A program made the translations under genes and the position numbers. Source: Rhodosorus marinus CCMP1338 (lineage: Eukaryota > Plantae > Rhodophyta). From it: a stretch of 64,000 nt of DNA. This document shows positions 14,028-59,564 of the stretch, piece by piece. The first letter of the stretch is position 1. Each line of letters opens with the position of its first letter. A model generated the notes under the pieces. That model ran no database searches. It saw nothing but the letters and a program-made list of their open reading frames with translations, and was not told where the DNA came from. The DNA is taken from NCBI GenBank assembly GCA_029953675.1, contig JAMWBK010000002.1:248001-312000 (forward strand). Reading direction: 5' to 3'.

Positions 14028-15071
14028 TTAGAGGGCAGCGTTTGGTATATACCTGACCCTTATGAGTATTTTTCCGTAAGCATGGCCCAATTGGAAAGCT
14101 TGGCAGGCTTTGGTGATTTCGCTCAGTTCGTACTGTCTCCACTCTGGCTGAATTCGCTTGGCCTGGAGCAGCGACATCGCGGCGCTCCCACTATCCCTCA
14201 GGGAGGAAGGAATTCCCTGCGCTAGATGGCCTCCCCAGTAGATTCCGTGGACGGTGAGATTCTTCACAAGTAGGATGTTTGCTGGGAGGCTGGGAACGGA
14301 ACCGCTTGCAAAACCGACAACACAGATCTGACCACCCCAGCGTGTACATTTCAAGGCTGCCTCGAGCGGTGCTCCGCCAACGTTGTCCAGTACAATGTCG
14401 AATTGAGCCTTCTTTGACGTCTCCCGTATCAATTTGGCGATGTTGCGAGGATCCTTGTCCGTCCGGCTGATCTCAACGACGCTTGAAGCTCCGAGGCGTC
14501 GCACAAAGTCGGCTTTGCTGTGATTAGTGGCAGTGCCCGTTACGTGAGCACCTATAGCCTTGCACAGTTGAACTGCCATCGAACCCACGCCGCCTGCAGC
14601 TCCTAGCACAAGGACTCTGCTCGTCGAGTTCATTCGTGCGCGCTGCATTAGAGCCATCCACGCGGTACCCATCGCTACGACTGAACTCGCAGCATCTTCC
14701 ATCGACACGCCATCGGGAACAGGGAACAGTGAGTCTGAAGGCACTTCTACCTTTTCTGCGACAGCACCATCTGACGTCACACCGCAAACGCGCTGGCCGA
14801 CAACCAGTCGTGATCCCTCCCCAACAGCTGCAACAACACCAGAAAACTCTGTCCCAAATATGAACGGAGGTTCCTTACGCTCTTGGTATTGACCCTTCAC
14901 TTGCAGCAAGTCCGCAAAGTTGAGAGAAACGACGTGCACAATCACGCGTACCCGACCGCCAGCCACATCTCCCTCTAGGGGTGGTAAGCTATCCTCAATC
15001 ACGATTGTACCTTCATCGCCAGGGTCTCCAAGTCGCTTTACAACAGCACCCCTCATGATCCAATTCATCAA
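14028..15071 (-). CDS. NADPH:quinone oxidoreductase-like, MDR/zeta-crystallin family
   Basis: SLNFADLLQVKGQYQ...PPFIFGTEFSGVV, Rossmann motif LVLGAAGGVG, DIVLDNVGG, VVGFASG, GKILI. No zinc-ligand cysteines. Confidence 0.92.
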   Translation of the reverse strand: MMNWIMRGAVVKRLGDPGDEGTIVIEDSLPPLEGDVAGGRVRVIVHVVSLNFADLLQVKGQYQERKEPPFIFGTEFSGVVAAVGEGSRLVVGQRVCGVTSDGAVAEKVEVPSDSLFPVPDGVSMEDAASSVVAMGTAWMALMQRARMNSTSRVLVLGAAGGVGSMAVQLCKAIGAHVTGTATNHSKADFVRRLGASSVVEISRTDKDPRNIAKLIRETSKKAQFDIVLDNVGGAPLEAALKCTRWGGQICVVGFASGSVPSLPANILLVKNLTVHGIYWGGHLAQGIPSSLRDSGSAAMSLLQAKRIQPEWRQYELSEITKACQAFQLGHAYGKILIRVRYIPNAAL

Positions 15072-16128: not shown

Positions 16129-18753
16129 ATGGAAGTCGTGGAAGGAAATGAGAAGGCTTTGAATGACGTTGACGTTATGGAAGTTGAGAAAGGTGGGGTG
16201 AAGGGTAGGAAAGGTGAGGTTGCTGAGGATGGGGACGATGTTGATGATGAGGCGCTGGATTATGAGTTTGAGGAGATAAAAAATGGAGCGTATATGGTAG
16301 ATTTATCGCATTCTGATGTTCCGGTCGAGGATATGGACAAGCAGATTCTTGTAGAGCGAGCGTATGACGCCTATGTAAGAACCAGATTGAACCCCGTGCG
16401 AGTAGCGAATCGTGCTGAGCTCGTTGCGATGGAGGTAGAGGATGCATCTGAGCATTCAAAGGACGTTTTCTACGAGGTCATTGGATGGGATCTCGCGAAT
16501 CAGGTCCAGAAGACTCCAGATGACGTGGGTAGGATGGTGGGAAAGCGAAATGGTTTGTCCACTAGGGGACAGAAGAAAGTCTCCAATCAACTGCAGACAC
16601 AGCTAGATGAGCTACCGAAGACTTTGAAGAAATATCGTGGACGTCAAAAGCTGCATGTAGCGCCTGCTGGCGAGCCGGAGAAGGAAAACCGCCGGGTTCT
16701 ACACTTGTGGCTGGAACTGGAGGATGATTATGGGAAGCGACGTGTTTTGAGAGAGGAACTGGAGTGGGACATATCGTTGTCCGAGGATATTAATGCGCCG
16801 GATTGGTTTGCATGGTACATGTGTGAGGAGCTTGGACTTGGGGTGAAGAACGTCAACCGTGTGGCTGAACATATCCGAATGCAGCTGCAAAGGCTTAAGG
16901 AGACGCAGCAGGACGCTCACGGGAGGCTGGGTGTTGTAGAGGGCGCGATGAAGGCATACAAAGGCACTTTTCTGGAACAGAAGGACGCGTATTCCGTGGC
17001 GCGGGAGATGGTCTATGCTTCCCTCATGAACACGTTCGATTTAATCGCGAGCATGCCATTTCAACGGGGATTATTTACCAGCCCGTTTCCGGCACAGTCA
17101 ACCGCTGGCTCATTGACTGCCGCAGCCTCACCACAAAGATCGCCACAGTCGTCTCCCGGGTACCGCGCATCCCCTCACCCTTTTCTTCCTTCGCCGACTA
17201 ACCCGATCGTAACACCGAGAGATACATTCGTTGGGTTGCAGGGAATCTCGAGCACTCCGACTCCGACAGCAGCGGGAACACCCGTAGGAAACCATCCAAT
17301 CGGGAATCAAACCCCGAAAGCCGATTCGGATATTTTGAATGTCCCATCGGCTATGGTTCACGGACTGGCCAGTGACGGCCGAACATTCCGCGAAAGGTTT
17401 CCACCCGACGATAAGATGCTAGCTGAGGGTGCTATGCCGTTGGTTTGTTCCTTCCCGGGCTGTGGTAGGCGGTTCAAAGAGCCGGGAAAGGTCCAGAAAC
17501 ATGAAACCATTCACTACGATGATGCAGATCATCATGTGCTGGGAAGGCTGTCAATAATAGAGCAGATTGATGAGGACGACTTCGACGAGCGGGACCCGAG
17601 GAGAGATACGTTTTTACACGACACGGCACTCCCTCATAGGTGCCCCTACGTTGGATGCGTGAAAAGCTTTTATTTCAACTCTCAGCTCCAGCGTCACAAG
17701 GTGTACCACGAGAAAGAGGGCCATCTGTTGCGAGCAGATACCGATATCCCCGAAGATTGGGGTCACCTGCAGTATGGATTAGGGGCTCGGGGGTCGTACT
17801 CTACCCGGCGAAACAACCCGCTGCCTTCCGCGGCCAGCGAAAGGCTCGGTCTGGGCTTACGTGCTTCCCCAAAATCAAAGTTTTTACAGAAGAAGGAACG
17901 CCGAGAGCCCATGGTTCGCTTGCCAAAGCCTTCGAAACCTCCACCACCTGTTGTCAACGCTGTCGTTCACGGAGTGGATTTGAGTAGGTTTTTGATCTAC
18001 TGGTGGCTGAACATTCCCATGTTTGGCTGAAACTGACTCCTTTTTTGGATTGTTTCGCATGAACTTAATAGGAAGCTTCCGACTCCACGCGTACAAAAGG
18101 GAAGAGCTTATGGCCTTTCGCAATGGCAGGACGAAGCCAAGGCACAATCACGCCAAGGGCGGTGGTTGTATTCCATGCAAACTGAAGTCTTTTGGATTGG
18201 ACATTCCAAAGGTAGGAATAGCTTTAGTCTGGGATCACATGCGTGAGTAGCTTCGAGAGGTGGACTCGCGTGTGAAGAGCACCGATGCACGAGCAGGACC
18301 GTTGCTGACATTGTAGCCCTCTTGCTCTTTGTGCCTGCTTAGATGCGGGATGTGGTGAGGGTTTTCTTGAGAGAGATGCGAAAGATGAGGGGAGAGCCAC
18401 CAGAGGAAGAAGAGAAGACGATCGAAGAAATCAAGAAGAAGAAGGCGTGGGAAGGGAGTGTGGACGCTGGAACAACAGCTGCGTCCGAAGCACCCTCGGA
18501 CTCGCTTCTTCGATCTCCAGGTGCCGAAAGCTCACCACCTCCCGACGGTCTATCAATACCTGGAAGTTCTCCGGCGCCGTCGGGATCCCCATTCCCCGAC
18601 ATGTCTCCCCCACCCGACTCCTCACCTGCACCAGAGAGCTCCCAAGCTGCGGATGACCTCCCAACCCCTCTACCCTCCCCTATGGACGATCAGGAACTGA
18701 ACCCCGTACTTTCACAAGATGATAATTCACAGAAGCAACCAGAAATCATCTGA
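16129..18753 (+). CDS. SNF5/SMARCB1/Sfh1-domain protein fused to two C2H2 zinc fingers (3 exons; introns 17984-18071, 18212-18342)
   Basis: SNF5 repeat 1 (ELVAMEVE...EVIGWDLAN...TPDDVGR...SNQLQTQL) and repeat 2 (EELEWDIS...APDWFAWYMCEELGL...VAEHIRMQL). Zinc fingers CSFPGC...HETIH and CPYVGC...HKVYH. Both downstream splices keep frame. Confidence 0.82.
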
Positions 18754-24610: not shown

Positions 24611-25518
24611 GGGCTCCTTACGTTGGCGTCCCCCATAAAACCGATTTCCAACTTGACGATGTCGCTCGATATGTATGTTTTACCGCCTCTTCCCGGTCCT
24701 TGGCACACCCCCGAACTCGCGCTTCACCACATCCTGCTACACTGCCTGTACAGAAGACTCACCAACAACATCCCGCGATTCAGCTCTTCAAGAATAACTT
24801 CCAAACAAAAAAAAAAGAAAAAGTGAGGGCCTGCCTGCAAGCGGAAAACTGAATGCATCGGCTCAACGCAGAACCCGCGAAAACCGGTAAGCTATAAAAG
24901 AAAGTCGACATAAAAGCATTTTGACAATGTCACACCTCCCACCTCCCCAACCCCCAAAGCCCCGCCCGCTACACTCTCCCACCCTTCCCTCCTCATCATG
25001 CCTCAAGTCAATCAAATTCCCACGGCAATCCTGAATTAACAGACTTTTTCGTTGACCAACTTTCGATGACGAACATGGCCAACACCATCGACTGGAACAT
25101 TCGCCTAGAGTGTGACCAAAAAGCCTTTCCAAACTACATTTTTCTTGGCCAAATTCTCAGCTCATGAAGGTTTGTTGAAAAAACTGGCTCGTACTTGCTA
25201 GGACCCTTGCCATAGGCGCAACAGCAGCTTGGCCCCAAAAATTCATGAACGAAATAAACCAAGTGGAGAACATTCGTCGCCCCCGACCAAAATTGCTCCT
25301 CAAAAAGTTCTAAACGAGCGATCCAAGGGAACATTGGCTTTCAATATATGGCCAATCTAACAGACCACTTGCTTGGCCAAAAATACCAGGTCAAATGTTC
25401 CAATGAATTTTGGCGAAGCTTGTAACTTGTTGATCGGTGGCAAAGCAAAGTCGTATGGTATCGATGGGTTGGAGGCGAGACGTAGATGCTTGACCCGATG
25501 GGCGTGAACGTCAGTCAG

Positions 25519-26973
25519 ATGGAGGATAAAGGAATAGCGATCCTTTACCGATCAGGATGGGACGGATGTTATCTCCACTACACCGATGATGATGGACAGA
25601 CGTGGACGGATCTACCTGGAGTACCATTCGAGAAGTGGTATGGCGGCTGCAGTATTCGCGCTTCACCAATTCACAAACGATCATCTAAAACCTCACGCCA
25701 TGCTTCTTGAATGTTTCAAACCAGTGACGAAGGGGAAGGATGGTATCGAGTTTTTCTTGAGTCCAAAGAGCGGATATCCTTTGCCGTCAACGACGGAGGT
25801 GGTAACTGGGACAACCCCAGAAAGCAGAAAAACTATGAGATCACTTCGACCGGCTCTTATGTATTGAAAGGTGGTAGAGTCTCGACTCTTACAACAGATG
25901 GTGTGAACTAAAGGCTCATCTATTCGAGCTCTCCGCAACCCCCGTTCTGAGCTGAGAAATCGCATCGTTCCCCCGCGCCCAACGTGTAATCTCAGGAATT
26001 AACCGAGTTCTGGTAGTCTCCGATCTCGACGGTACGATGATTGGAGATGATCATGGTACGAAGGACTTCTCGGAAATATGGTACAGAGAGCTATCCCTTC
26101 GTGAAGGTCAACTAGTGTACAACACCGGAAGATCGCTGAGCTCGTACGTTCAGGTTCAGAAGGAGAAAGGCCTTCCTCAGCCTACGGCCCTTATCACGGC
26201 CGTGGGGAGCGAGATTTACTGGATTTCTAACTCCAATGAGGTAGTTCTCGATGAAGAATGGGCTCAATCTTTGAGGAACAACGGTTGGAATCGCGAGACT
26301 GTTGTATCGGTACGCTTGCCCATTGGAAAAACAAACGGCGCAACGCAGCAGAGTTCGTGGTTTAACTAACTGCCAATCCCCGAATCAACCAATCTAGGCT
26401 TGTGATGATGTGGTGGCCTCTGACAAGGCTCATTACAGACCGGCTGACGAGCAGTTGGAGTTCAAGATTGTACTTGGAGTGAAGAAGTCGGATCTAGACG
26501 AGGTCCAGTCATCAATATCAAGCCGAATTGAAGCCGATGGTTGCAAAGCAAAACTTGTAGTTAGCGGGAGTGGCGAGTGGAGGTGAGCAGGCATACTCGC
26601 ATTGCTCTACCACAATATGTTCCCTCTTCATCAGCGTTTGGAAATTTGCCACTGACGACAAGCCTCCTCCTCTTCCAGGTTTCTGGACATCTTGAGCCCG
26701 ACGGCTGGGAAGTTGTCTGCGATGCAACGAGTGAGAGAGAAGCTCGGTTTCGGGCCAGAACAAACTGTAGCGTGCGGAGATTCTGGTAATGATATTGCGA
26801 TGATGGAGGGTAGCGAACGCGCGATTATCGTTGGTAACGCACAGGAGGAGCTCATGGATTGGTACAGGTCGAACAAAGACGGCAACGAGGATCGTATTTA
26901 TGTATCCGATAAGAGATGTGCACACGCAATTGTTCAAGGCTTGCGGAGCATGGGGTTTGTCGTAGACAATTAG
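25519..26973 (+). CDS. CBM25 starch-binding module fused to sucrose-phosphatase-like HAD-IIB phosphatase (5 exons)
   Basis: CBM25-like YRSGWDGCYLHY...WTDLPGVP...FAVNDGGGNWDN...NY. HAD motifs SDLDGT, NTGRS, ITAVGSEIY, EQLEFK, AGK, GDSGND. Introns ~25638-25724, 25901-25995, 26310-26397 and ~26583-26678 keep frame. Confidence 0.9.
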
Positions 26974-27271
26974 CGTCGAGATGGAAGCCGGAGCTCCTGA
27001 TGGTGGACCTCGTCCACCGGACACAAAAAAGCTCAAGTTGTGCACTTTAATGTACATCCATCACAACCCATCAACACGGGTCGTCAAGTAAAATCGGAAA
27101 TTACCAATATCCCTTGAGCAACTTGCAAGCCCGGACGTTACCAACGAAATTAGAGGAGCAGACCGGGAGCTGGAAAAGCTCCGATTACTTGCGCAAGTGA
27201 TTATTTGCAGTTGGGAGCCATTGCACAAGGCATCCTCACAGAAAAGTTAAACCGCGATTCCACTACCAAAA

Positions 27272-28946
27272 TCAAGAAAATGACTGAGTTAGGCCTATCT
27301 GCAACCCGTTCTTCTCTCTGTCACTTCCAGAAGATCGAACAACATGGCACCAGTTCAGTTCCAATCTGCCTATAGGCAGCGCGGCAGTAATGCCAACGCC
27401 CACGGACGCCCTTGTGCTTTCAAACCACGACGTCGGCTTCAAAACCTGCGCGACGACAACAACAGAACAGACCACAAAAAGGATTTTTCCAAACATTTCA
27501 ATTACGGTTCGGATCCAGAGGATTGCTGATGACTTCTTGAACGCCTGCCTACCTTAGGAGTCAACGACTCAAGGCTGTTCACGTCACCCACCATGCCCCA
27601 GACGTGGGCCTTTGCAAGGACCGTCCTTAGCAATCCACTCATACCGATAGGGATCGCAAGACCCATAAACATGGTAGTATAAAACTCTGCGCCCAGCGGA
27701 TCCCTTCCGTCATGTTCTCCAACTCCGCGACTTCGAAACCCTCTCATCGACGCTGGGCCCCCAACAATGAAACGATCAATGACATGTACAGGACCACCCC
27801 TAGGAAGCCTATTGATCATTCCCATCTTGGCACAGCTGTTAAAGACTAGGCCAGATTGACCAAGTGGGAGATGAACTGGAATTCGATAAAGAGATGGAGA
27901 CCCTCAGAGCTCCAGGGGACAACAGCTCCCGTAAGAGATCGAGGAGCACTTACGTTGGCCTTCGTATTCGTGAAGAAAGTGCCGAGCATCTCCGAAGAGT
28001 CCGGCGAGTTCCGCTTTGACTGAGGAGAACAATCCGAAGTTGGGGCTGAGTGGATTGTCTCTGAGGTCAATGACAGACGCCGCTGTAACCGCGCTCTTAA
28101 AGCTATGACCGCACTGCTCCCTTATCTTGGCTCCAGATGAGTTCGGTGCTTGTCCAACCTTTGATTGTATGAATGGAATGTCATCAGTGGACTGATCTGT
28201 TGTCCGGGAAGAGCGGGTGCTCTCAAAATTACTTACATTTCTCCATGAAGCTTCGTACGAAAGCGTAAGGAGCGGAAGCGATAGAATGACGTCTGCACCG
28301 TACTTGTCGACGGTGTAAGAGAGTTTTTCCTCGGTGGAGTAGAGACGGAATCCGAGACTCGACGCCAAATCGAACAAGAACGGCTTTGTGAATTCCAGTG
28401 CAAAGTAGTTCTTAGATCCGATGCTGGAGCTCGCGCTAGAGGTCATGGAGGTAGGACTAGCTCCGGCATTTGCACGCAGGGTTTCCAACCTCCCAAAGAC
28501 ATTTCTGATGTGGAAACTTCCGCCTACAGTCGTATCCTGGATGAGAAAGCAGTTGTTTTCATTGAGCTCGAAGTTATGATCTGCCAAAGGAGAACCGAGT
28601 GTCGGGCAGCCAATACCCCGAAGCTTCCTCCGCTTTCAGTTCCAACGGTTATGCTTGTTCTCTGCTTCTCTTCAACCGAGAAAATCACATCCGTCTTGCC
28701 CTTCTCCTCGGACTCCTCCAAGTATGCTTCGACGGACTCAAACGTGTCGGTCTGTTTAACTGCCTCAATAACTTCGCTTAGCTTCTCCAAGATCGATCCA
28801 AACGTATCTCCCTCGCCAGAAAGGCGTAGGATCCATTCCAGAAAGTCTGGCCTTGTCCTCTTTGAACCAAGGACTTGGACACCACCAATCTGAAGATCAG
28901 CTCCCAGGGCCTTCTCCAGCTGGCTCTCAGTGATCTCCTCTTCCAT
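27272..28946 (-). CDS. SAM50: Mitochondrial SAM50 / Omp85 beta-barrel assembly protein (multi-exon)
   Basis: POTRA-like VQVLGSKRTRPDFL, barrel start GSFHIRNVFGRLE, DRFIVGGPASMRGF (VRGF motif), C-terminal RASVGVG...GRLELN...LQIGLTQSFS*. Confidence 0.92.
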
Positions 28947-40041: not shown

Positions 40042-42068
40042 CTACCCTGGGTCTATTGTGACGGAGCTGTCTAGATCGCTTTGATCCGTTGGTTCACCCA
40101 TCTCGCTACTCTCGTCCGAGTTGCTTTCAGCAGGTGTTTCTTCCACAGGTGCTTCGGTTCGTCCAGCTGCGATTTCCGCGCCCCACCTAGCGGGCCGCTT
40201 CTCTGTTCGTGGTCCTTCCGCGGACAAAATGAACGATTCTGACTCCGTCTCTTCGTCTCCAACGTGTATTTCGCTCCGTCGTCTGCAGAATTGGATCAGG
40301 TGCACATAAAAAGAAAAATCTGGTCAAACCCAAGCGCTAGGAGAGGAAACAACTAGATCGATAAAGAGACTCCTCATCCACGGGCTTACGCTCTTCGCCT
40401 GGTGTCCCTCAGATCGAAAAAGAAGTAGAGAAGCAAATAGCCAGCGATGATCGCTCCAATAGGAACGGCGCCACTTCCTTTTCTCTCGGCCTGCGGTGGT
40501 AGCTTGATACCTCCTTTCACAAACTGCTTGGGGTATTCGCCTAGGATAGATTCATTTCATATACGTTCAGAAACTTTGCTCCATGAGTTGCTCAGTTTCG
40601 GACTGTGGACGAATAGACCGTAAGATGCGGGCCGCCTCCACCGTTTTCGACACTGATTACATCTCACCTGTTTGAATACCTTCCTCCATGAACCAAGTAT
40701 CCATTTCGAGAAACAAAATTTCTTCCTGCTCGCGCCATTCCTTGAGCTTCGGGTCGACCGCCTCGATGAGGTTATTCTCCCCTTCAACAGCATCCCAAGC
40801 AGAGTCATCAACTACCGTCTTGCATACTCGGTAGAGCTCGGGTAACCAAGGCTGACCATCTGGAAGCAGTTTTTGGCCTCTTCCATCCTGAGCGAAGAGT
40901 TGTCAATCGAAAAACGCAGGCTAATCAGCTTTCCGAAATGAAGTTTCTAGTCTCGATGGCTCTGAGATTCCTTTACCTGCCGGCAGAGTGGGGAAGACTC
41001 AGCCAGAGCGATCTCTGGAGCATTCATTAAGGTGTAGCTCAGGTCGTTTGGTCCTTCTCCCCCTGCGACAGAAACAGAGAGAGAGTGCGTTTAGAATCGT
41101 GAAATTGGTGGTCCGGAAACTGGGTAGGTTTCTTTCTCCTAGAACCTACTTCTCCTATTGTGAATAGTTTCTCCGTGTGGAACCGCATCGGCTATGGACT
41201 GCCATATAAAATCTCGTCTTCCACGGACAAAGGATTGATAATCGAGGTTGTCAGGAGGAAGAGCACAGGCGTGTGTGAATACTACGACCGCTTGGCGCCA
41301 GACGGCGTGTCCGAAATAGGTAGTGATAGCCCGGATGTGCATCTCGTCGGAACGATCACATCGGGTATCGTCAAGCCTGGTGACGTAAAGCATAATATTC
41401 ACAACGCCACCGCGGTTTTCGACAAGCTCGTAGACAGTGGGAAGGAGTCCATCGGTGGCGTCCTTGGGCAGCCCTGGGGTATCGATAAACTCCAGCAAGA
41501 CTCCGTTGAAGCGCCTTGCCACGACATTGATGCGTTCTCTACTTCTCTTCCCTCGCACCCATGGAAGCCTCAACCTGGGAAGGGGGAAGTTGCGAAATGT
41601 CCTGAACAGGGGTTCTAGAACTGGACTGAACATTATCAACGTCATCCTCCATCTTGGAAGTGGAGCACTTCCACCGGGCTTATCCGCAACGGCATGCTCT
41701 CCAACCAGCTCGTTCACCAGCGACGATTTTCCAGAACCTTCTTGACCCACGATAAGCACAGTCCCTCGATCCCGTCCACATTTCTTGAGGCTGTCAGTAA
41801 ACTCCTTCAAAGCGGCAGTAGTTTGTCGACTGAAAGATGCGGTCTGGAGGTTAAACTCGGCCACCGGCTCCAGATCATCGAGGTCCTCCGGTCGTAAACC
41901 AGTAATCGCGCGTCGTACATGCCCTGAAGCCCGCCTGATAAGCTGACCCAAGTCAATTCCTCCATCATCATCCCCGTCCTCTTCCAGTGGCTGCACTAGA
42001 TCACCGGCTTCAGATAGCGTTGATGAGAGTTCATCGGTCCCGTTCTCGCTCCCCGTACGATCGGCCAT
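40042..42068 (-). CDS. TOC34: Toc34/Toc159-family plastid outer-envelope import GTPase (5 exons)
   Basis: G1 GQEGSGKSS, G3 IDTPGL, LYVTRLDDTR, FGHAVWRQAVVVFTHA, spliced IALAESSPLC and LLPDGQPWLPEL, then TM AVPIGAIIAGYLLLYFFFDL and an acidic tail. Confidence 0.85.
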
Positions 42069-45481: not shown

Positions 45482-47197
45482 ATGGCGGGCGTGGATGGAG
45501 ATGAGACAAAGGTTTCGTCAGGTAAGCACAAGTCGATGTTTTCGTTTCATTACCAGGGATCCCTGCTGACTCTAAGCTTTGTTGTCCTTTTACAGAGACA
45601 ACTTTCGAAATGCCAGTGAGTCCGACAATTGCGGAAGCAGTAGTTCGTCAAATGGAGTTTTATTTGGGAAGGGCCAACCTTCCGACAGACTACTTTTTGT
45701 CCCAGCACATGGACGGCGAATTCTGGGTTAGGATTGAAGTTCTTGCCGCCTTCCCTAAAATGATGAGATTTGGGTTGACCGCGGAACAGATAGGACAAGT
45801 CGTAGGGGAGAGGTCAAACCAGCTGGAGGTTGACTCAGAGCAGATGATTGTGAGGCCAAAGTACCTAGTTGAGGAGAAGCAAAAGTCGGTCCTCATTCTG
45901 CGAGATGTTCCAGAGACAACCACAGAAGATCAGGTTAAGGAGCTCTTGGCTAATGAGCAGTGCCCAGAACCACTCAACATAAGGCCGGACATCGCGAACG
46001 TTTGGTTTCTAGATTTCGACGGCACGGAGACTGCAAGGAACTGTCTTGAATCTCTCAAGGACAAGTCGTTGAATGGTATTGTTCTTGCTTGCTGCTGCAT
46101 TATGCTTTGGACTTTAGACTTTCCAAGAGTTCTAATTTCGGTCTATTTCCGCCGAACACCAGGGGCACCTGTCAAGGCTAGGGTGAAGAACGTGTCGAGC
46201 AAGGTGGCGGATGCGGGTCACTCTCCTGTGGCCGTTCAATACGTTCCCGAATATAGTGTACTCTCTCCTTACTTGGCGCCACTCACGCCTAATGGCTATC
46301 CAAGATATCCAGCAGGACCCCGGGGAAAGGGACGAAAGACTGCGAACGGGGCTACGAGAAGAGGGCGGAGACGAGGACAGTCAGAGCAGAAAGAGGATGT
46401 GCGGAGGGGGTCCCAGAAGCAGGAGAACCCCGCCCCAGCCGAATCCATGATGAAGTCGGGCGCGCACTTCCCCCCTCTGAACGTAGATGGAGAAAATACG
46501 CCAACCGTTAGCGGTATGTGCTAAGAGCATCTGGTTTCGCTGCTCGAGACTTGGTCGCTGATCGTCTTGTTTTGGTTTCGGAAATCTTCGTTTAACAGAG
46601 ATCCAAAGCGACAAGGAAGAATCTGCTTCCATTGAGGACAATGCAACTGCGTCCAGCAAGGATGAAAGCGTTGATGAGGAGCAGAAGAGCAAAGAGACTA
46701 GGAGCTCAGACGCGAAGTGCTCGGCCGCTGATTCAGTTTCGTCCGTACCCGCGGTGCAGGTGTCGTACGCTGCAATTGCTCGCACGGTTTATAAGCCCAA
46801 AGAGACAGCTGACGCTCATCGGGAGGTACCTCCCCGTCCCGTGGCTGAGCCCCGTGAGCTTGGAGTGAGCGAAACTAAGCAAAATCCCGAGGCTCTGAAA
46901 GCTGGCCTGGCTAAGGAAAAAGCTATACTGAGCGCAGCAGACAGATCGCCCAAGGTAGAATTCTCACCACGCAATCGTTCGCTGATGTGTTCTAGTTGAT
47001 TCGTATGGTCCTCAGTCTGCTCCCCTTGTCGTTTGCTTCCTGTATAGTCACAGAAGCCGATCGTTCCCGCCATGTCTGCCGCGGCCTCTGTATGGGAGAG
47101 CAAGCCAAGTGCTGTGCTTGAGGCTCCGTCTCGATGCGTTGAGACGACTGATGATACTCAGCTTGACTCGAGGCCGAGAATGATTCAAAGCAGCTAA
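45482..47197 (+). CDS. LARP4: La-related protein, LARP4-like (La motif + RRM; 5 exons)
   Basis: RQMEFYLGRANLPTDYFL (La motif), SVLILRDVPE...VWFLDF...GAPVKARVK (LARP4-type RRM), VSYAAIAR resembling the LARP4 SYAEV segment. Confidence 0.85.
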
Positions 47198-48304: not shown

Positions 48305-49523
48305 CTAGCCACTTTCAGATGGAACCGGGCTGGACGGTTCAACCACCGGTTTTGATCGTAGATAAACCGCCAGCATTGCAACAAGCGGAGCCAGTGCGAC
48401 AATCGACACTGCTGACGGTACTCTCACGCCAAAGTCTTGGAAGTGCTTTGTGGCAAGAACAAAGCTCAGCGCCGGAGACTGGGTTAGACGTGCACATGCA
48501 GCAGTTTTGTTCAGATCTTCGAATGCTCAATCTCTCAGACTCCAATCGAGCTTCCAGCTGGCTTACCTTGAAAGCAGTCTCAATCGCTAGGGTTCTCGAT
48601 TCCTTTTCTCCCATTGAGAGGCTTTTGGGAAGAAGATATCCGAACAGCCCACCGCACAAATGTAGGATGACGACCGGTGCCAGTAGGAACAGAAAGTAAC
48701 TCTTGAGCGCCGCTGATGTCTTTGCTATCGATACGGTAACGAGGAAACAGGTCGCCAGGATTCCGGCGACGGGGAGCCCTGGTTCGATTCTCCTTGTCGC
48801 TTGAGGAAAAAAGGCGTTAAAGCCGACCCCGAGGAAGATGGGAAATAGAACGACCTGCACTGCCGATTTGGCTACGCCGATGACATCGATGGGGATGATC
48901 TGCCCGATCAGAACCTTTGAGAGCATCGGCAGCATGAAGATCGCTGAAAACGTGGTAAGCGTGGTCATGGCTACCGATAGAGCAGTATCCCCGCCAGCGA
49001 TGTATGTACACAAGTTTGATGCTTGGCCTCCGGATACAATGCCAAGCAGGATCAGGCCGACTTGAAATTCTCTGCTCAGAGTAAAGAGCTTCGTCAAGAT
49101 CAACGCCGTTGCTGGCACAAACATGTAACAGCCGATGAAGCAGATACAAAGCTCTCTCCATTTACTGGATGCGCGGCTCAGATCTGCGAACGATAATGTC
49201 AATCCCATCGAAAGCATCAATGCGCCCAGACCTAGGGTTAAATAGATGTCCTTAACGCCAACAAAAGCCGCTGGAAACACAACACCCAACGCAGAAGAAC
49301 CCAACGACCATAGCGGGAAGAGATTGGTGAACAACTGAAGAGGAGAAGGCCCAGAACTTTTCATAGAAATGCCATCATCCCCACGCGCATCTGCTCGCCT
49401 CAGAACGCTCAACCTCCTCGCCGAGATCGCGAACGCTGCAGACTTGTTCATCGGACTCTTCGCGGTTCCTGACGAGCGCGTCCAAACTCGGTGCGCCGAG
49501 GGCAGAAACAACAAGGACGCCAT
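48305..49523 (-). CDS. Plastid bile acid:sodium symporter (BASS) family metabolite transporter (2 exons)
   Basis: Transit-peptide-like N-terminus, MLSMGLTL, GGQASNLCTY..GDTALSVAMTT, RTLAIETAFK|SPALSFVLATKHF. Substrate cannot be assigned. Confidence 0.9.
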
Positions 49524-50134
49524 AATCGATGACCAAAACGACAACAAGACCAACCTGTCAAAAAACACTCATAAAGCTCGTCGTCCTTTGCCAACTACAG
49601 ATCCAGTTGCGAGCTTGTCTTCCCAGATATCCAAACCGCACGATCTCAAAGAAAACAAAGACTAACCAATAGGTCCAACTGGATTCTCAAGAACGGTTTC
49701 CGACAAAGCATACGCTACTCCCCATTTCCACCCCCAAAAACTCTTCGCAAATGTTAAAAGACGAGACGTCCGAGGGTCCCCCGCGAGTTCCATACTCTGT
49801 GGGCGATACCTACCTTTTGGGTTTCCCCATTAGTTTGCAGACAAGCTACATACACCTCGACAGGCTTTGGCCGTTTGGGTTTAGTTTGAGGCAAAGGGAT
49901 GATCAAAGTTTTCCCATTGGAAAAACTGAGCGCAGGAAAAACAATCATTTTCCATATCTCCCCTCAACTAGTTGCTATCCGTACCTTTTCAGTACCGAAG
50001 CAGCCGGATCAGACAAGTAATAGATAAGTAACCATAGCTTCAATCCTCACCCAGTCACCACAGTCGTCCCGTTCAGGCTCTCTTCACGTGCATTCGCCTT
50101 TTTGGAGCTCAGAGCTTCCGTGAGGGCGGGGGGC

Positions 50135-50422: not shown

Positions 50423-51084
50423 ATGACTACGTTTACTATACCCCCGCCCGAGGCTTACGACGGCAAGCGGGATTTCGTCAGGATTCAGACGTTCGTGGCC
50501 TCACTGCGTGGCTACCTGAACTTCCATCACGTAGCAGACTCCGGCCGCCAGTCAGTCCAGTACGCGGGACTGTTTTTGAAGGCCCAGGCCCAGGTCTGGT
50601 ACCAGGGTCTTCGGCAGGCGACGGATGGCATCCCGGAGGCACTGGACTCTCTCGACGATTTCGAACAGGCCCTGCGAGGACAGTTCGAACCTCACGACCA
50701 TATCGAGCGAGCCCGGGCCAAACTGCGTAGCGCTCGACAACGCGGCCCTGATGTCACCCGTTATGTCGACTATCTCGATGAACTTTTCATGCAGTTGGGC
50801 GAGTTCATCAGCGACTCTGAAAAGCTTGAGCGTTTTAAGGCGGGCTTGACTGGTCGTGAGCGAGACTTCGTCTACTATGGTCGACCCAAGACCTATGAAG
50901 AAGCGAAAGCCATCGCATTAAGACTGGCGGGTGCCCACGAGATGCCGAAGGAAGCGACGAAGGGATCCTCGGATCCACCTAGAGCAAACCCCGCACAACG
51001 TCACCGCGTCGACCACACACTCGAAGCATGGGAGCGCCGCCAACCTGCTACCTGTGTCGAGAGATAGGACATATTAAACATGAC
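50423..51084 (+). pseudogene. gag: Retrotransposon gag, frameshifted before a truncated CCHC knuckle
   Basis: PEAYDG...A.VWY...F..ALRGQFEP...F..GL capsid pattern. CYLCREIGHIKHD at 51046-51084 lies in another frame and is cut before its last Cys. Confidence 0.85.
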
Positions 51085-51483
51085 GGTCTCCTCACCGACA
51101 GCCAACCCGTATGTCCGTGGCTCGTCGTACCTCGGTAAGTTGGCGGCTTTCGCAACGTCCTCTCTAATTGCCGTCACCGCACCGGTGTCGATGAGACATT
51201 CCACCGGTTCCGCCTATTGCAGTTAGGCTTGCATTACCCCGTTGCTGTAACCCAACGCTTGGGATGCTGGTCGTTGGACTCTCGGACGGCATCCCAAGCG
51301 TTGGGTTACAGCAACGGGGTAATGCAAGCCTAACTGCATAGGCGTGGTGGCGGCGGAACCGGTGGAATGTCTCATCGACACCGGTGTGGTGACGGCAATT
51401 AGATAGGACGTTGCGAAAGCCGCCAACCTACCGGGGTACGACGAGCCACGGACATACGGGTTGGCTGTCGGTGAGGAGACCGT
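51083..51483. repeat. Long inverted repeat (185-bp and 195-bp arms, 21-nt loop) spanning the protease start
   Basis: 51083-51267 is the reverse complement of 51289-51483, apart from 4 substitutions, a 1-nt indel and an 11-nt indel. Confidence 0.97.
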
Positions 51484-54400
51484 GATCAGCCCCGGAGTGA
51501 CGGAGACACTCCAGGGACGACAATTCATGACGAAGCTGCGAATATTCAAGCATCTAAGGCACGATGTGTACTTAGGTCTCGACTTCTTCAGGCAACATCG
51601 ATTAACTATCGATTGTAGCGCGGAGCCCCCACAGCTGGTACTGGGAGCGGACACCAGCATGCGTGGGATAACAAGTATGGAAACTGAGGAAGAAATAGGG
51701 GAGAGGTCTGGCGCGGTCATCCGGAAAGAGGAAGGCCTAGAGAAAGGCGGAAAGGACCAGGTTGCCGACCCAGGAAAGAGGTTTGGTGCGGTCATCCGGA
51801 AAGAGTTTCCCCAAGTTTTCCAAGATACATTGCCGTTGCCACCGAAGAACCGGCAACGATATGCACTCAAAATCGAATTGGAACCAGGGGCGAGTACACC
51901 AGCTCAACGCGCATATTCGATGTCACGGGTCGACCGAGAGCGGCTACAAGAAGAGCAAGGATTTATCTCACGGAGCAGAGGTCCGTATGCTGCACCTGTG
52001 TTGTACGTGGACAAAAAAGACGGTGGGCGACGCCTCTGCATCGACTATCGCCGGTTGAACCAGATCACCGTGCGAGAAAGAACGACCCCGCCTAGAGTGG
52101 AGGAGCTATTGGATACCCTGAGCAGCGCTCGGGTTTTCACAACGTTAGACCTTCGCTCGGGATATTGGCAGTTGCCAATTGAACAGGCATCACGCGAGAA
52201 GACGGCCTTTGTCACGTGCTTCGGACAATACCAATGGAATGTCATGCCGTTTGGGTTGAAGAATGCGCCCTCGGCATTCATCCGCTACTTGACGGACGTA
52301 TCGTATGATCTTCTCAACCAGTGCGTGGTGTTATACGTTGGCAACATTCTGGTATATTCCCCCGATGACATACAACACCAGGACGATGTTCGAAAGGTGC
52401 TACGACGCCTCGAGCAGCATCAGTTGATCGTCAAATACTCGAAGTGCGGTTTTGGACTACGCCAAGTTTGCTACCTAGGCCAAATCTTGGCGGGGGGCAC
52501 TCGACGTCCCGATCCGGAGAAGGTCAAAGCAATTCAGAAGTGGAGGACGCCAACGACGGTTAAGGAGCTACGGGCCTTCATGGGTTTCGCGAACTTCTTG
52601 CGCCCCTTTGTACCACACTTCGCCCAAGTGGCGGCGCCCCTCCACAGGCTAACGAAGAAGGACCAGAAGTGGGGTTGGCACACGGACGAACAACAAGCCT
52701 TTGATGGGTTAAAATCCGCCATATAAGCAACCACCATGCTGTACATGGTTGATCCGATCCTCCCCTTCATCGCAGACGGGCGCGAGCGACACCGGGGTGG
52801 GTGCAATCCTATTCCAGACCCGCCAGGATCAGGAGGTGCCCGTGGCGTATATGTCCCGATCGTTCAATAGTACCGAGAAACGCTACAGTACGTACGAGAA
52901 AGAACTCTACGCCATCGTCCTGGCCATCCGAGGTGGTCCGTGTATCTTGATGGGCAACAGTTCACTGTGCGTACGGACCATAACCCGCTACGCTTCCTGC
53001 AAACACAGACGACATTAACTCGTCAGCAGGCGCGGTACGTGAATATATTACTACCCAACTCCTTTGAGGTTCAATACGAACGCGGCAAGATAAACGTCGC
53101 GGATGCACTGAGTCGCGACGCACTACGAACCACCCGCGTCACGATGGAAGCCGATTGGACTCCCCCGAATACCAAGCCGATCCAGAATTCTGCACGCAAT
53201 TTCGAAGCCCGGACCAGTTTGAGGGTTTCCAACGAAAAAAGGGTCTATTATTCCTCCATGCACGACTTTGCGTACCCGAACGCCGTGTTAATCAGGTCAT
53301 CGATGGGCACCACCAGTCTCTAACGGCAGGCCATTTCGGCGTACAAGCTACTTACCGTGTGGTGCGACGACGCTATTACTGGCCTACCATGAGGAAAAAC
53401 TTTTTTTTTTTTGCACGCGCGTACAACAATGCGAGATATGCCCGTGAACAACCACTTCGGCGCAACCAGGGCGAGCTGCAACCGCTCGCAATTCCGAGGA
53501 ATCGCGCGGTCGACTGGACTATGGACTTCATAACAGGCTTTCCCAGTATCGCGGGTAATGACGCTATACTAGTTGTGGTCGATCGGCTCACGAAGTACGC
53601 CGTATTTATCCCGACGGCGAAAATGGTAACCGCGGAAGGAGTGGCAACACTTATCCTGCAACATATCGTCGCCTGGTTCGGATTGCCACAGAGTTTTGTC
53701 ACAGATCGCGATCCAGTCTTCACGGCAACTTTTTGGAGCCACCTAATGCAATTACTGGGCATTCAACAACTATTGTCCACGGCATACCATCCTGAAACGG
53801 ACGGTCAGACGGAGCGCGTGAATCAGACACTTCAAATCATGCTGAGATGCTGCTGTACAAATCGCACGTGGGTGCAGAGCCTCCCGCTACTTCAGCTGGC
53901 GTATAGCAATCATCCCTCAGCCAGCACGGGGTATTCACCATATTTCCTGTTAACAGGGGGGGCATCCGCGGCTCCACTTGGATGTCTCACTACCTACCAC
54001 GCAAATTGAGAACCTCCCCGATGCCGCTACTGCATTCTCCCAACGACAACAGCGAATTCTTGCAGATGCACGCAAATCACTGACCCTGGCACAAGAAATA
54101 TCTACGGCATCCGCTAATACCCACCGTCATGCGAAGGTGTTCCACGTCGGCGATTACGTTTATTTGTCAACGAAGAATCTCTCACTGGAGGGCCCAACCC
54201 GCTTCCAACCTCGATGGTTGGGCCCGTTTCCCGTGATCGAGAAACACTCTGACGTGGCATACACTCTGCAGTTACCGGATGAGATGCGCATACATTCGAC
54301 ATTTCACGTTTCCTTGCTAAAAGGTGCCCCTACGTGTCCTCCGAATTCTCCGATGCGGAGTATCCCTCTCCAATCGGATCTCTATTCAACGCTACCGATC

Positions 54401-54592
54401 CTGTCGGTGTTGGGGGTCCGCCATGCGGCTAACGGGATCCGACAGTTCCTATGTTATCGCGAAAAGGAATCCTGGACTGATGCGACTTGGATACCCGAGC
54501 CGGACTACCCGACCGATCTACAATCTCGACGACGCTTACGACACTACCTCAATTATCGCAAGGCGCTTGACGCGCTACCTTCAACTTCTTGA
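51289..54592 (+). pseudogene. pol: Retrotransposon pol (PR-RT-RH-IN-chromo), inactivated
   Basis: PR LIDTGV with an in-frame TAG, and VYLGLDFF. RT RLCIDYR, LDLRSGYWQ, MPFGLKNAP and YVGNILVYS (catalytic YVDD lost). RH GASDTGVG, YSTYEKEL. IN MDFITGFP, TDRD, HPETDGQTER. Chromo-like DATWIPE. Confidence 0.95.

Positions 54593-57672: not shown

Positions 57673-59564
<1,892 letters not shown>

Follow-up and report, generated by a model that had tools for sequence, protein, structure and literature searches.

Breakdown of starch is controlled by reversible phosphorylation, and the phosphatases known to act on starch or glycogen are, to our knowledge, dual-specificity enzymes only (SEX4, LSF2 and laforin). 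These proteins, found in plants (SEX4, LSF2) or in vertebrates, some protists and red algae (laforin), embody a common concept, that of a phosphatase which bears a starch- or glycogen-binding module and resides with the polyglucan. A second relevant system is sucrose-phosphate phosphatase (SPP, EC 3.1.3.24). The Synechocystis enzyme (Slr0953; PF05116, TIGR01485) is a HAD protein with four catalytic motifs and a C2B cap, and the dimeric SPPs of land plants combine the S6PP catalytic domain with a C-terminal dimerization domain, S6PP_C (PMC5113954). The third is the starch-binding module CBM25 of bacterial amylases. The CBM25 of Bacillus halodurans (BhCBM25) binds granular starch through a single site with a Kd of ~30 µM, and bacterial CBM25 modules usually occur in tandem with another CBM25 or a CBM26, which raises affinity ~50-fold (PMC3398936). 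Here we describe a red algal gene in which a CBM25 module is fused to an S6PP-type phosphatase.

The gene lies in a 64,000-nucleotide stretch of Rhodosorus marinus nuclear DNA (the window), at positions 25486–26973 of the + strand. Inspection of ORFs in the window revealed no single reading frame covering this interval. Removal of four GT-AG introns of 87–96 nt leaves five exons with an uninterrupted coding sequence for 373 residues, and the spliced product is identical to KAJ8907294.1 of R. marinus, in line with the red algal origin surmised in an earlier sequence-only reading of this DNA. Exon 1 (25486–25637) begins at the first ATG and covers the N-terminal half of the CBM25, with H31 (25576–25578) and W40 (25603–25605). 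Intron 1 (25638–25724; 87 nt, GTATGG...CAG, phase 2) interrupts the module, the C-terminal half of which is encoded by exon 2 (25725–25900) along with W79-D-N (25807–25815) and the start of the linker. Intron 2 (25901–25995; 95 nt, GTGTGA...CAG, phase 1) falls within the linker that joins the CBM to the HAD domain. Exon 3 (25996–26309) carries the N-terminal part of the HAD core, with motif I (DLDGT) at 26022–26036, motif II (TGRS) at 26124–26135, and the hinge and entry to the cap (VGSEIY) at 26202–26219. After intron 3 (26310–26397; 88 nt, GTACGC...TAG, phase 0), exon 4 (26398–26582) encodes the C2B cap, including the conserved motif E232-Q-x-x-F-K237 (26449–26466). Intron 4 (26583–26678; 96 nt, GTGAGC...CAG, phase 2) is followed by the coding part of exon 5 (26679–26973), which contains motif III (K287, 26710–26712), motif IV (GDSGND, 26776–26793) and the stop codon TAG (26971–26973).

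A 1448-nt transcript contig of the sister strain Rhodosorus L001, whose protein is 93% identical to that of the window, matches the window as five aligned blocks, the ends of which coincide with the predicted exon borders to within 1–2 nt. Both domains are therefore encoded on one mRNA; the sequence-only reading had named separate cDNAs for the CBM and HAD parts as an outcome that would speak against it, and the L001 transcript covers both. Where the alignment of this transcript stops defines the extent of the 3′ UTR (26974–27266), which ends 6 nt short of the stop codon of a convergent Omp85-family gene. The other genes nearby in the window have unrelated housekeeping roles and offer no clue to function.

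An in-frame TAG (25483–25485) directly precedes the first ATG at 25486. Two other candidate starts lie downstream, at 25498, the equivalent of the sister-strain start, and at 25519 (MEDKG). The sequence-only reading had the protein begin at 25519, which is an internal Met. In the sister strain, an in-frame TAA is found two codons upstream of the start equivalent to 25498. No more than 15 residues lie ahead of the first CBM strand in the Rhodosorus protein, and the stops found in frame shortly before the start rule out a presequence. The earlier claim that a transit peptide is lacking thus holds, and the missing presequence supports the cytosolic location proposed with it; the floridean starch of red algae is also cytosolic.

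Residues 19–101 match the Pfam CBM_25 model with 39.0 bits (E = 1e-9), well above the gathering score of 27.3, and the closest solved CBM by sequence is BhCBM25 (2c3v; E = 3e-13 over 90 residues). H31, W40 and W79 align to H26, W34 and W74 of BhCBM25, which we take to be the ligand-contacting His/Trp/Trp platform that stacks on α-1,4-glucan, and the WDN motif is kept as well. All six red algal sequences and most of the green sequences conserve the platform residues. These data confirm the N-terminal CBM25, aromatic residues included, that had been recognized earlier. Compared with the CBM25 modules of bacterial amylases (BhCBM25 and that of the Paenibacillus β/α-amylase, 2laa), the window protein differs in having one module and in pairing it with a phosphatase rather than a glycoside hydrolase. 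Given the weak binding expected of a single CBM25, tethering to the granule may be transient.

Seven residues after the CBM, the S6PP domain (PF05116) spans residues 113–366 with 198.5 bits (E = 2e-58; gathering score 20.3). All four HAD motifs—D119-L-D121-G-T123, T153-G-R-S156, K287 and G309-D-S-G-N-D314—are found, and they are invariant across the family alignment, so the SPP-type HAD-IIB domain is as complete as the sequence-only reading had it. The subfamily model TIGR01484 (HAD-SF-IIB) scores 63.8 bits against a cut-off of 41.8. An AlphaFold model of the protein (mean pLDDT 91, pTM 0.84) places the cap at residues 182–281. Synechocystis SPP (1s2o) is both the closest solved phosphatase by sequence (E = 8e-29) and the top Foldseek match of the model (TM 0.89 on target), with the same fold, the four motifs and a C2B cap in common. 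Sequence identity to cyanobacterial SPPs is 31–40%, and neither they nor the window protein possess the S6PP_C of plants. The N-terminal CBM25, in contrast, is found in no cyanobacterial SPP among the matches. With land-plant SPPs the window protein shares the S6PP catalytic domain family; it differs from them in carrying the N-terminal CBM25 in place of S6PP_C and in ending at residue 373, 7 residues past the S6PP match.

The precomputed Pfam annotation omits CBM_25 in every family member. This omission could mean that the N-terminal region is no true domain, and it would fit an account in which the fusion is a gene-prediction artefact, made of two neighboring genes, or in which the protein is catalytically dead and purely glucan-binding or regulatory. 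The artefact is refuted by the L001 transcript, with its exon borders matching the genome. Moreover, the same architecture occurs in >100 proteins, including those of intron-less genes on picoeukaryote contigs; the catalytic residues are all intact; and between the two Rhodosorus strains purifying selection acts strongly on both modules, with dN/dS values of 0.07 (CBM) and 0.10 (HAD domain) at a dS of ~0.37. Taken as a whole, this account is highly improbable.

Given these features, we infer a cytosolic enzyme of two modules. The first (residues 16–105), a single CBM25, would anchor the protein to granules of floridean starch or to soluble α-glucan with modest affinity, in the 10-micromolar range. 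The second (residues 113–366), a HAD-IIB phosphatase of the S6PP family, would follow the standard HAD mechanism, in which D119 is the predicted nucleophile that forms the aspartyl-phosphate, D121 the acid/base, T153, K287 and N313 the residues that bind phosphate, and D310 and D314 those that bind Mg2+. The C2B cap would shut over the sugar, like the ‘sugar tongs’ of Synechocystis SPP. The cap residues E70, R91, E111, Q112 and K116 (Synechocystis numbering), candidate sugar contacts judged by their invariance among cyanobacterial SPPs, are retained. Their retention makes it most likely that the enzyme acts on a small sugar phosphate ending in a glucosyl unit: either sucrose-6F-phosphate or a look-alike, for example a phosphorylated maltooligosaccharide. 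We favor, at somewhat better than even odds (probability roughly 0.55), a sugar-phosphate phosphatase that is tethered to starch and takes part in its turnover on the granule or close by, as opposed to a free cytosolic enzyme of sucrose biosynthesis.

Could the protein nonetheless be a genuine SPP, which completes sucrose synthesis and is merely placed by its CBM close to its carbon source, starch, for instance in stress-induced conversion of starch to sucrose? The retained cap residues are consistent with this idea, as are an identity of 38–40% to cyanobacterial SPPs, about equal to that to green algal homologues, and a score of 186.9 bits for the SPP equivalog TIGR01485, above its trusted cut-off of 183.65. 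The margin to this cut-off is only 3 bits, however, and five positions invariant in cyanobacterial SPPs are altered (D61T, Q107R, S118V, P158S and G164L). Orthologues do bear the name in databases, by similarity, such as ‘putative sucrose-phosphatase 2’ in Porphyridium and ‘sucrose phosphatase’ in Raphidocelis. The sequence-only reading had listed prior characterization of the fusion as an ordinary SPP in algae among the outcomes that would speak against it; a literature search for CBM-SPP fusions in algae yielded no relevant paper, and no characterized protein was found among the green algal homologues. The biology of the hosts also weighs against sucrose: proteins of the window type occur in organisms not known to make it, in contrast to cyanobacterial SPPs. 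Published surveys detected neither sucrose-phosphate synthase (SPS) nor sucrose synthase in the red algal genomes examined or in several of the green ones, Chlamydomonas and relatives among them, and Chlamydomonas makes no sucrose (PMC3797821); volvocine algae nevertheless retain the CBM-S6PP gene. Stylonematophyceae store starch in the cytosol and accumulate digeneaside, sorbitol and floridoside, and sucrose is not among their reported solutes (PMC8523428). We consider a genuine SPP unlikely. Since the surveys detected no SPS in these red and green algal genomes, a role in sucrose synthesis is doubtful.

The sequence-only reading implied that the fusion is rare. At least four red algae of the Proteorhodophytina carry it, and it occurs widely in Chlorophyta; as judged by sequence, it is not unique to Rhodosorus but belongs to a family common to several red and many green algae. 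Homology searching with the CBM region alone, by a method that needs shared exact 5-mers, matched only a Rhodosorus fragment. The orthologues of Timspurckia, Porphyridium and Compsopogon have their CBM at the very N terminus; red algal members have 2–15 residues ahead of it, and in-frame stops lie upstream at three loci. Green algal ‘sucrose phosphatase-like domain-containing proteins’, such as those from Raphidocelis, Chlamydomonas incerta (HXX76_013681) and Bryopsis (BSKO_06399), are homologous over 95–98% of their length, CBM-like module included, at 36–40% identity to the window protein and with an equally short linker. Their CBM is more divergent, Pfam CBM_25 being detected at E ≤ 0.01 in only 8 of the 32 aligned members, a set that includes three red algal proteins. 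The cap differs as well: green members have Lys, Arg or Cys at E70 and Leu at R91, whereas the red algal clade keeps both residues. Some matches, ~400-residue single-exon genes on long contigs, were considered as possibly bacterial; this source was rejected, as the contig is compact eukaryotic, with spliceosomal, proteasomal and ribosomal genes.

Full-length homologues across Chlorophyta lie behind N-terminal extensions. Among 72 complete, Met-starting entries with a CBM from outside the red algae (a set that includes one mis-grouped Rhodosorus protein, P0126), the median number of residues before the CBM is 64. Where at least 25 residues precede the CBM, the first 60 residues are rich in Ala, Arg and Ser, with few acidic residues, so by length and composition the extensions are judged to be transit-peptide-like. 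With red algal members starting at the CBM, it follows that the predicted location tracks the compartment in which starch is stored. A paralogous green clade has two CBM48 modules added to the same enzyme, indicating that glucan-binding modules recur in this family of S6PP phosphatases. In a neighbor-joining tree of the S6PP domain, the red algal proteins fall outside the green clade, adjoining the cyanobacterial root. In 200 bootstraps, cyanobacterial monophyly was recovered in 100%, green monophyly in 47% and the Rhodosorus–Timspurckia pair in 31%. As only the first of these is supported, we do not put vertical descent ahead of an ancient transfer.

The association of the phosphatase with glucan-binding modules, obligatory across two paralogous clades, raises the question of whether the polymer itself is the substrate. 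The protein would then be a glucan phosphatase, a HAD-type analogue of SEX4, LSF2 and laforin, that strips the C6 or C3 phosphate esters set by glucan, water dikinases, and its CBM25 would bring the glucan chain to the catalytic site. The very short linker, the confidence of the two-domain model and a predicted location that tracks the starch compartment are all consistent with this proposal. Against it stands the cap, which is intact and SPP-like: capped C2B HAD enzymes enclose small substrates, and a cap is typically missing from HAD enzymes with macromolecular substrates. We therefore regard a polymer-directed enzyme as quite unlikely. Any resemblance to the described enzymes would in either case be one of concept, since theirs is a dual-specificity Cys-x5-Arg phosphatase with a CBM48 or CBM20 and the window protein is an Asp-based HAD phosphatase with a CBM25. 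A Pfam search returned no match to a DSP-family domain, with its Cys-x5-Arg loop, at E ≤ 1, in agreement with the earlier claim that the protein is unrelated to laforin and SEX4. A broader formulation, which we put forward tentatively as a minority possibility, is that CBM25/CBM48-S6PP proteins constitute a third class of phosphatases directed at starch. This class, of HAD type, would be ancestral to both algal groups, red and green, and independent of the dual-specificity enzymes; it would remove phosphate from phosphoglucan chain ends or from phospho-oligosaccharides set free as the granule is degraded. If so, ‘sucrose phosphatase’ would be a misannotation across hundreds of algal genomes.

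HAD-IIB enzymes also include mannosyl-3-phosphoglycerate phosphatases (MPGPs). The substrate might be the phosphorylated compound from which red algae make a compatible solute (floridoside phosphate, isofloridoside phosphate or mannosyl-3-phosphoglycerate), and the enzyme might couple starch breakdown to osmolyte production. The window protein does match TIGR01486, weakly, at 40 bits, and Stylonematophyceae make digeneaside and floridoside (PMC8523428). On the other hand, the scores for MPGP models lie far below their cut-offs, and PMC6642608 credits the synthesis of floridoside phosphate to TPS-like proteins. The osmolyte link, which the sequence-only reading had proposed, is further weakened because CBM-S6PP proteins occur in algae that differ widely in their compatible solutes: the family is shared with green algae, which use other solutes, and also with Porphyridium and Compsopogon, such that a lineage-specific osmolyte is unlikely. 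A solute-precursor phosphatase seems very unlikely on these grounds.

The CBM-S6PP family is conserved and under selection, its phosphatase fold is unrelated to that of the known starch phosphatases, and its predicted location shifts from the plastid in green algae to the cytosol in red algae, tracking starch. Collectively, these data point to an unrecognized step of algal starch metabolism. That the CBM is missing from precomputed annotation makes the architecture invisible to routine searches. A true SPP would instead imply that a pathway of the sucrose type, presumed missing from the whole phylum, exists in certain early-branching red algae. In both cases, automated annotation is spreading the name ‘sucrose phosphatase’ to proteins of organisms that apparently do not make sucrose.

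No open reading frame covers all of 25519–26973, the interval to which the sequence-only reading had assigned the gene; the coding sequence is divided between two frames. Joining five forward-strand exons (25486/25519–25637, 25725–25900, 25996–26309, 26398–26582 and, for the coding part of exon 5, 26679–26973) across four GT-AG introns of 87, 95, 88 and 96 nt yields an unbroken CDS. Translated from the first ATG (25486), the spliced product is identical to GenBank KAJ8907294.1 ('hypothetical protein NDN08_007409', Rhodosorus marinus, 373 aa; UniRef name 'sucrose-phosphate phosphatase'). This identifies the window as part of the nuclear genome of a stylonematophycean red alga, an origin previously given only as probable. 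A 1448-nt transcript contig from a sister Rhodosorus strain (L001) maps to the window as five blocks of 86–93% nucleotide identity, with ends that match the proposed exon borders within 1–2 nt, and its protein (P0001) is 93% identical to that of the window. The CBM and the phosphatase therefore lie on a single mRNA, which removes the concern that they might be separate transcripts. Given a transcript that carries both domains, it is hardly credible that the gene is a prediction artefact; that it encodes a dead enzyme is hardly credible either, with its catalytic residues intact and both domains under selection.

Pfam places CBM_25 at residues 19–101 (39 bits versus a gathering score of 27.3) and S6PP at residues 113–366 (198.5 bits). 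The nearest solved structures by sequence are Synechocystis sucrose-phosphate phosphatase (SPP; 1s2o, E = 8e-29) for the phosphatase part and the CBM25 of the Bacillus halodurans maltohexaose-forming amylase (BhCBM25; 2c3v, E = 3e-13) for the CBM. An AlphaFold model based on a family alignment of 32 sequences is confident (mean pLDDT 91, pTM 0.84) and comprises a β-sandwich (residues 16–105), a 7-residue linker and a Rossmann-like core with an α/β cap; its top Foldseek match is 1s2o (E = 8.5e-24, TM 0.89 on target). All four HAD motifs are intact, and the predicted active site matches that of a functional Mg2+-dependent HAD phosphatase. In the CBM, H31, W40 and W79 align with BhCBM25 H26, W34 and W74, which we take to be the ligand platform. 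A comparison of the two Rhodosorus strains (dS ∼0.37) gives dN/dS values of 0.07 (CBM) and 0.10 (phosphatase), indicating strong purifying selection on both domains.

The fusion, whose rarity was initially implied, turns out to define a family matched across chlorophytes and four red algal genera. In the first homology search, many chlorophyte proteins (including those of Bryopsis, Ostreobium, Trebouxia, Tetradesmus, Haematococcus, Dunaliella, Tetraselmis and volvocine algae) matched over 98% of the query at 34–40% identity. The red algal carriers all belong to early-branching mesophilic classes: besides Rhodosorus, they are Timspurckia oligopyrenoides (P0002, whose contig neighbour is an MMETSP1172 protein, taxid 708627), Compsopogon caeruleus (P0094/P0165) and Porphyridium purpureum, whose 'putative sucrose-phosphatase 2' was recovered when the red algal alignment was used as a search profile. 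No named match from Bangiophyceae, Florideophyceae or Cyanidiophyceae was among the 120 best of either search (with a word-index prefilter), which is suggestive of absence from these classes. No bacterial CBM–S6PP fusion was seen among the family matches. Single-exon matches of ∼400 aa on long contigs were considered as bacterial and rejected; they come from compact green picoeukaryotes.

Across the 32 aligned sequences, the N-terminal module is clearly homologous, with W25, W40 and F70 invariant and H31, W57, W79, D80, N87 and Y88 conserved in at least 90%. Pfam detects CBM_25 at E ≤ 0.01 in only 8/32 of these. The precomputed Pfam annotation of all listed members consists of S6PP and Hydrolase_3; CBM_25 is missing throughout, also from the Rhodosorus entry, although a direct scan gives that protein 39 bits. 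The architecture is therefore effectively unannotated. In a green paralogous clade that includes Mesostigma, two CBM48 modules precede the CBM25-like module and the phosphatase; the W74-equivalent of the CBM25-like module is often Glu in these paralogues (P0079, P0083, P0105, P0112 and P0120). Their cap motif reads S/T-E-x-P-H-R in place of E-Q-x-x-F/H-K, which points to a substrate different from that of the CBM25-only clade. Forms without a CBM are present in green algae, e.g. Ostreococcus. Other S6PP-like phosphatases carry C-terminal HMG boxes or, in one protein, an N-terminal protein kinase (P0070, P0077, P0087, P0184); the HMG-box fusions lack a CBM and are abundant in marine metagenomes.

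An in-frame TAG immediately precedes the first ATG of the window gene, L001 has an in-frame TAA two codons 5' of its start, and in the Timspurckia contig an in-frame stop is followed by a Met two residues ahead of the CBM. In Porphyridium and Compsopogon, too, the protein starts at the CBM. With at most 15 residues ahead of the first β-strand of the CBM, a plastid transit peptide (already judged missing in the sequence-only reading) and a signal peptide are excluded, and the Rhodosorus protein should be cytosolic. Floridean starch of Stylonematophyceae is likewise located in the cytosol (PMC8523428). Among 72 complete, Met-starting non-red-algal entries with a CBM, a set that includes one mis-grouped Rhodosorus protein (P0126), the median number of residues ahead of the CBM is 64, versus 2–15 in red algal proteins. 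Where this stretch is 25 residues or longer, the first 60 positions of the protein contain 13.5% Ala, 11% Ser, 10% Arg and 5.5% Asp+Glu. N-termini rich in Ala, Ser and Arg and poor in acidic residues are typical of chlorophyte transit peptides, and the length and composition of these extensions suggest that they are such peptides. Green algae store starch in the plastid and red algae in the cytosol; the predicted location of the CBM–S6PP proteins fits the starch compartment in each case.

Positions without variation among ten cyanobacterial SPPs were compared (Synechocystis numbering). Red algal proteins keep E70, D78, W81, W89, R91, E111, Q112 and K116 but have T for D61, R for Q107, V for S118, S for P158 and L for G164. 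To these changes the green CBM25 clade adds Lys/Arg/Cys at E70 and Leu at R91. The glucose-binding site in the Synechocystis cap sets specificity (PMC5113954), which suggests that the substrate of the window enzyme is small and carries a terminal glucosyl unit. Starch is the sole feature common to all carriers, and a glucan-binding module the sole constant accessory. The best reading, to which we assign a probability of about 0.55, is that this module tethers the phosphatase to starch, where it would act on a soluble glucosyl sugar phosphate arising at the granule; candidates are a sucrose-6-phosphate-like compound or a phosphorylated maltooligosaccharide. Action on the glucan polymer itself is unlikely, as C2B-capped HAD enzymes normally close around small substrates.

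The protein scores just above the trusted cut-off of the NCBIfam plant/cyanobacterial SPP equivalog (186.9 versus 183.65), as a true SPP would. However, a survey detected neither sucrose-phosphate synthase (SPS) nor sucrose synthase in the red algal genomes it covered or in several of the green ones, and Chlamydomonas has no SPS activity and accumulates no sucrose (PMC3797821), yet our homology search finds the gene kept in its relatives. The solutes of Stylonematophyceae are different ones: digeneaside, sorbitol and floridoside (PMC8523428). For these reasons a biosynthetic sucrose role is doubtful, and we regard a true SPP as a minor possibility; that the enzyme dephosphorylates an osmolyte precursor seems quite improbable.

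The Rhodosorus S6PP domain is about equally far from cyanobacterial SPPs (38–40% identity) and green homologues (38–45%). In a neighbour-joining tree of this domain, red algal sequences fall outside the green clade, with weak bootstrap except for cyanobacterial monophyly. That CBM, short linker and HAD follow one another in the same order speaks for the fusion having arisen once, before or around the red/green split; ancient transfer could also have produced the distribution.

A convergent multi-exon Omp85-family gene (Sam50/Toc75-like; 27272–28587, minus strand; three ORF pieces match PF01103) has its stop codon only 6 nt past the last aligned position (27266) of the phosphatase transcript, and the two 3' UTRs therefore abut or overlap. 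In the Timspurckia contig (L002, 1–2747), a convergent octopine-dehydrogenase-like gene lies 114 nt downstream of the orthologue, both in one assembled 'transcript', which again suggests that convergent transcripts overlap in compact red algal genomes. A Ty3/gypsy-type LTR retrotransposon body (50423–54592, plus) encodes gag/Ty3 capsid, reverse transcriptase, integrase (H2C2 and rve) and a Tf2-type SH3 tail in separate ORFs, so it may be frame-broken. Two clearly paralogous tandem ORFs (287–1177 and 2117–2938, minus) are predicted to have a single membrane anchor each and weakly resemble alpha/beta-hydrolases, with Hydrolase_4 scoring below threshold. An AIG1/Toc34-like GTPase ORF (41139–42068, minus) is possibly a plastid import receptor component. 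One long ORF (16129–18030, plus) joins a SNF5/INI1 domain to C-terminal C2H2 zinc fingers, a combination that is unusual in a SWI/SNF core subunit. Ordinary nuclear genes encode a bile-acid:sodium symporter family transporter (48339–49568, minus), a RIO kinase (57673–58452, minus), a zinc-type quinone oxidoreductase (14028–15071, minus) and a La-domain protein (45610–46524, plus); none of these four has a link to carbohydrate metabolism.

In the literature searched, we found no paper describing or assaying a CBM-bearing S6PP-type phosphatase. A plant SPP study took in five green algal ORFs as 'algal SPPs' without the plant C-terminal domain and left the CBM unmentioned (PMC5113954), and database names of family members are based solely on similarity. 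Taken singly, the fold of the enzyme, the CBM family and the concept of tethering a phosphatase through a CBM are known; the CBM25–S6PP combination is not, and neither are its distribution and the way it correlates with the starch compartment. A database search by architecture would overlook the family, and its interest would turn high if the substrate were phosphoglucan-derived.
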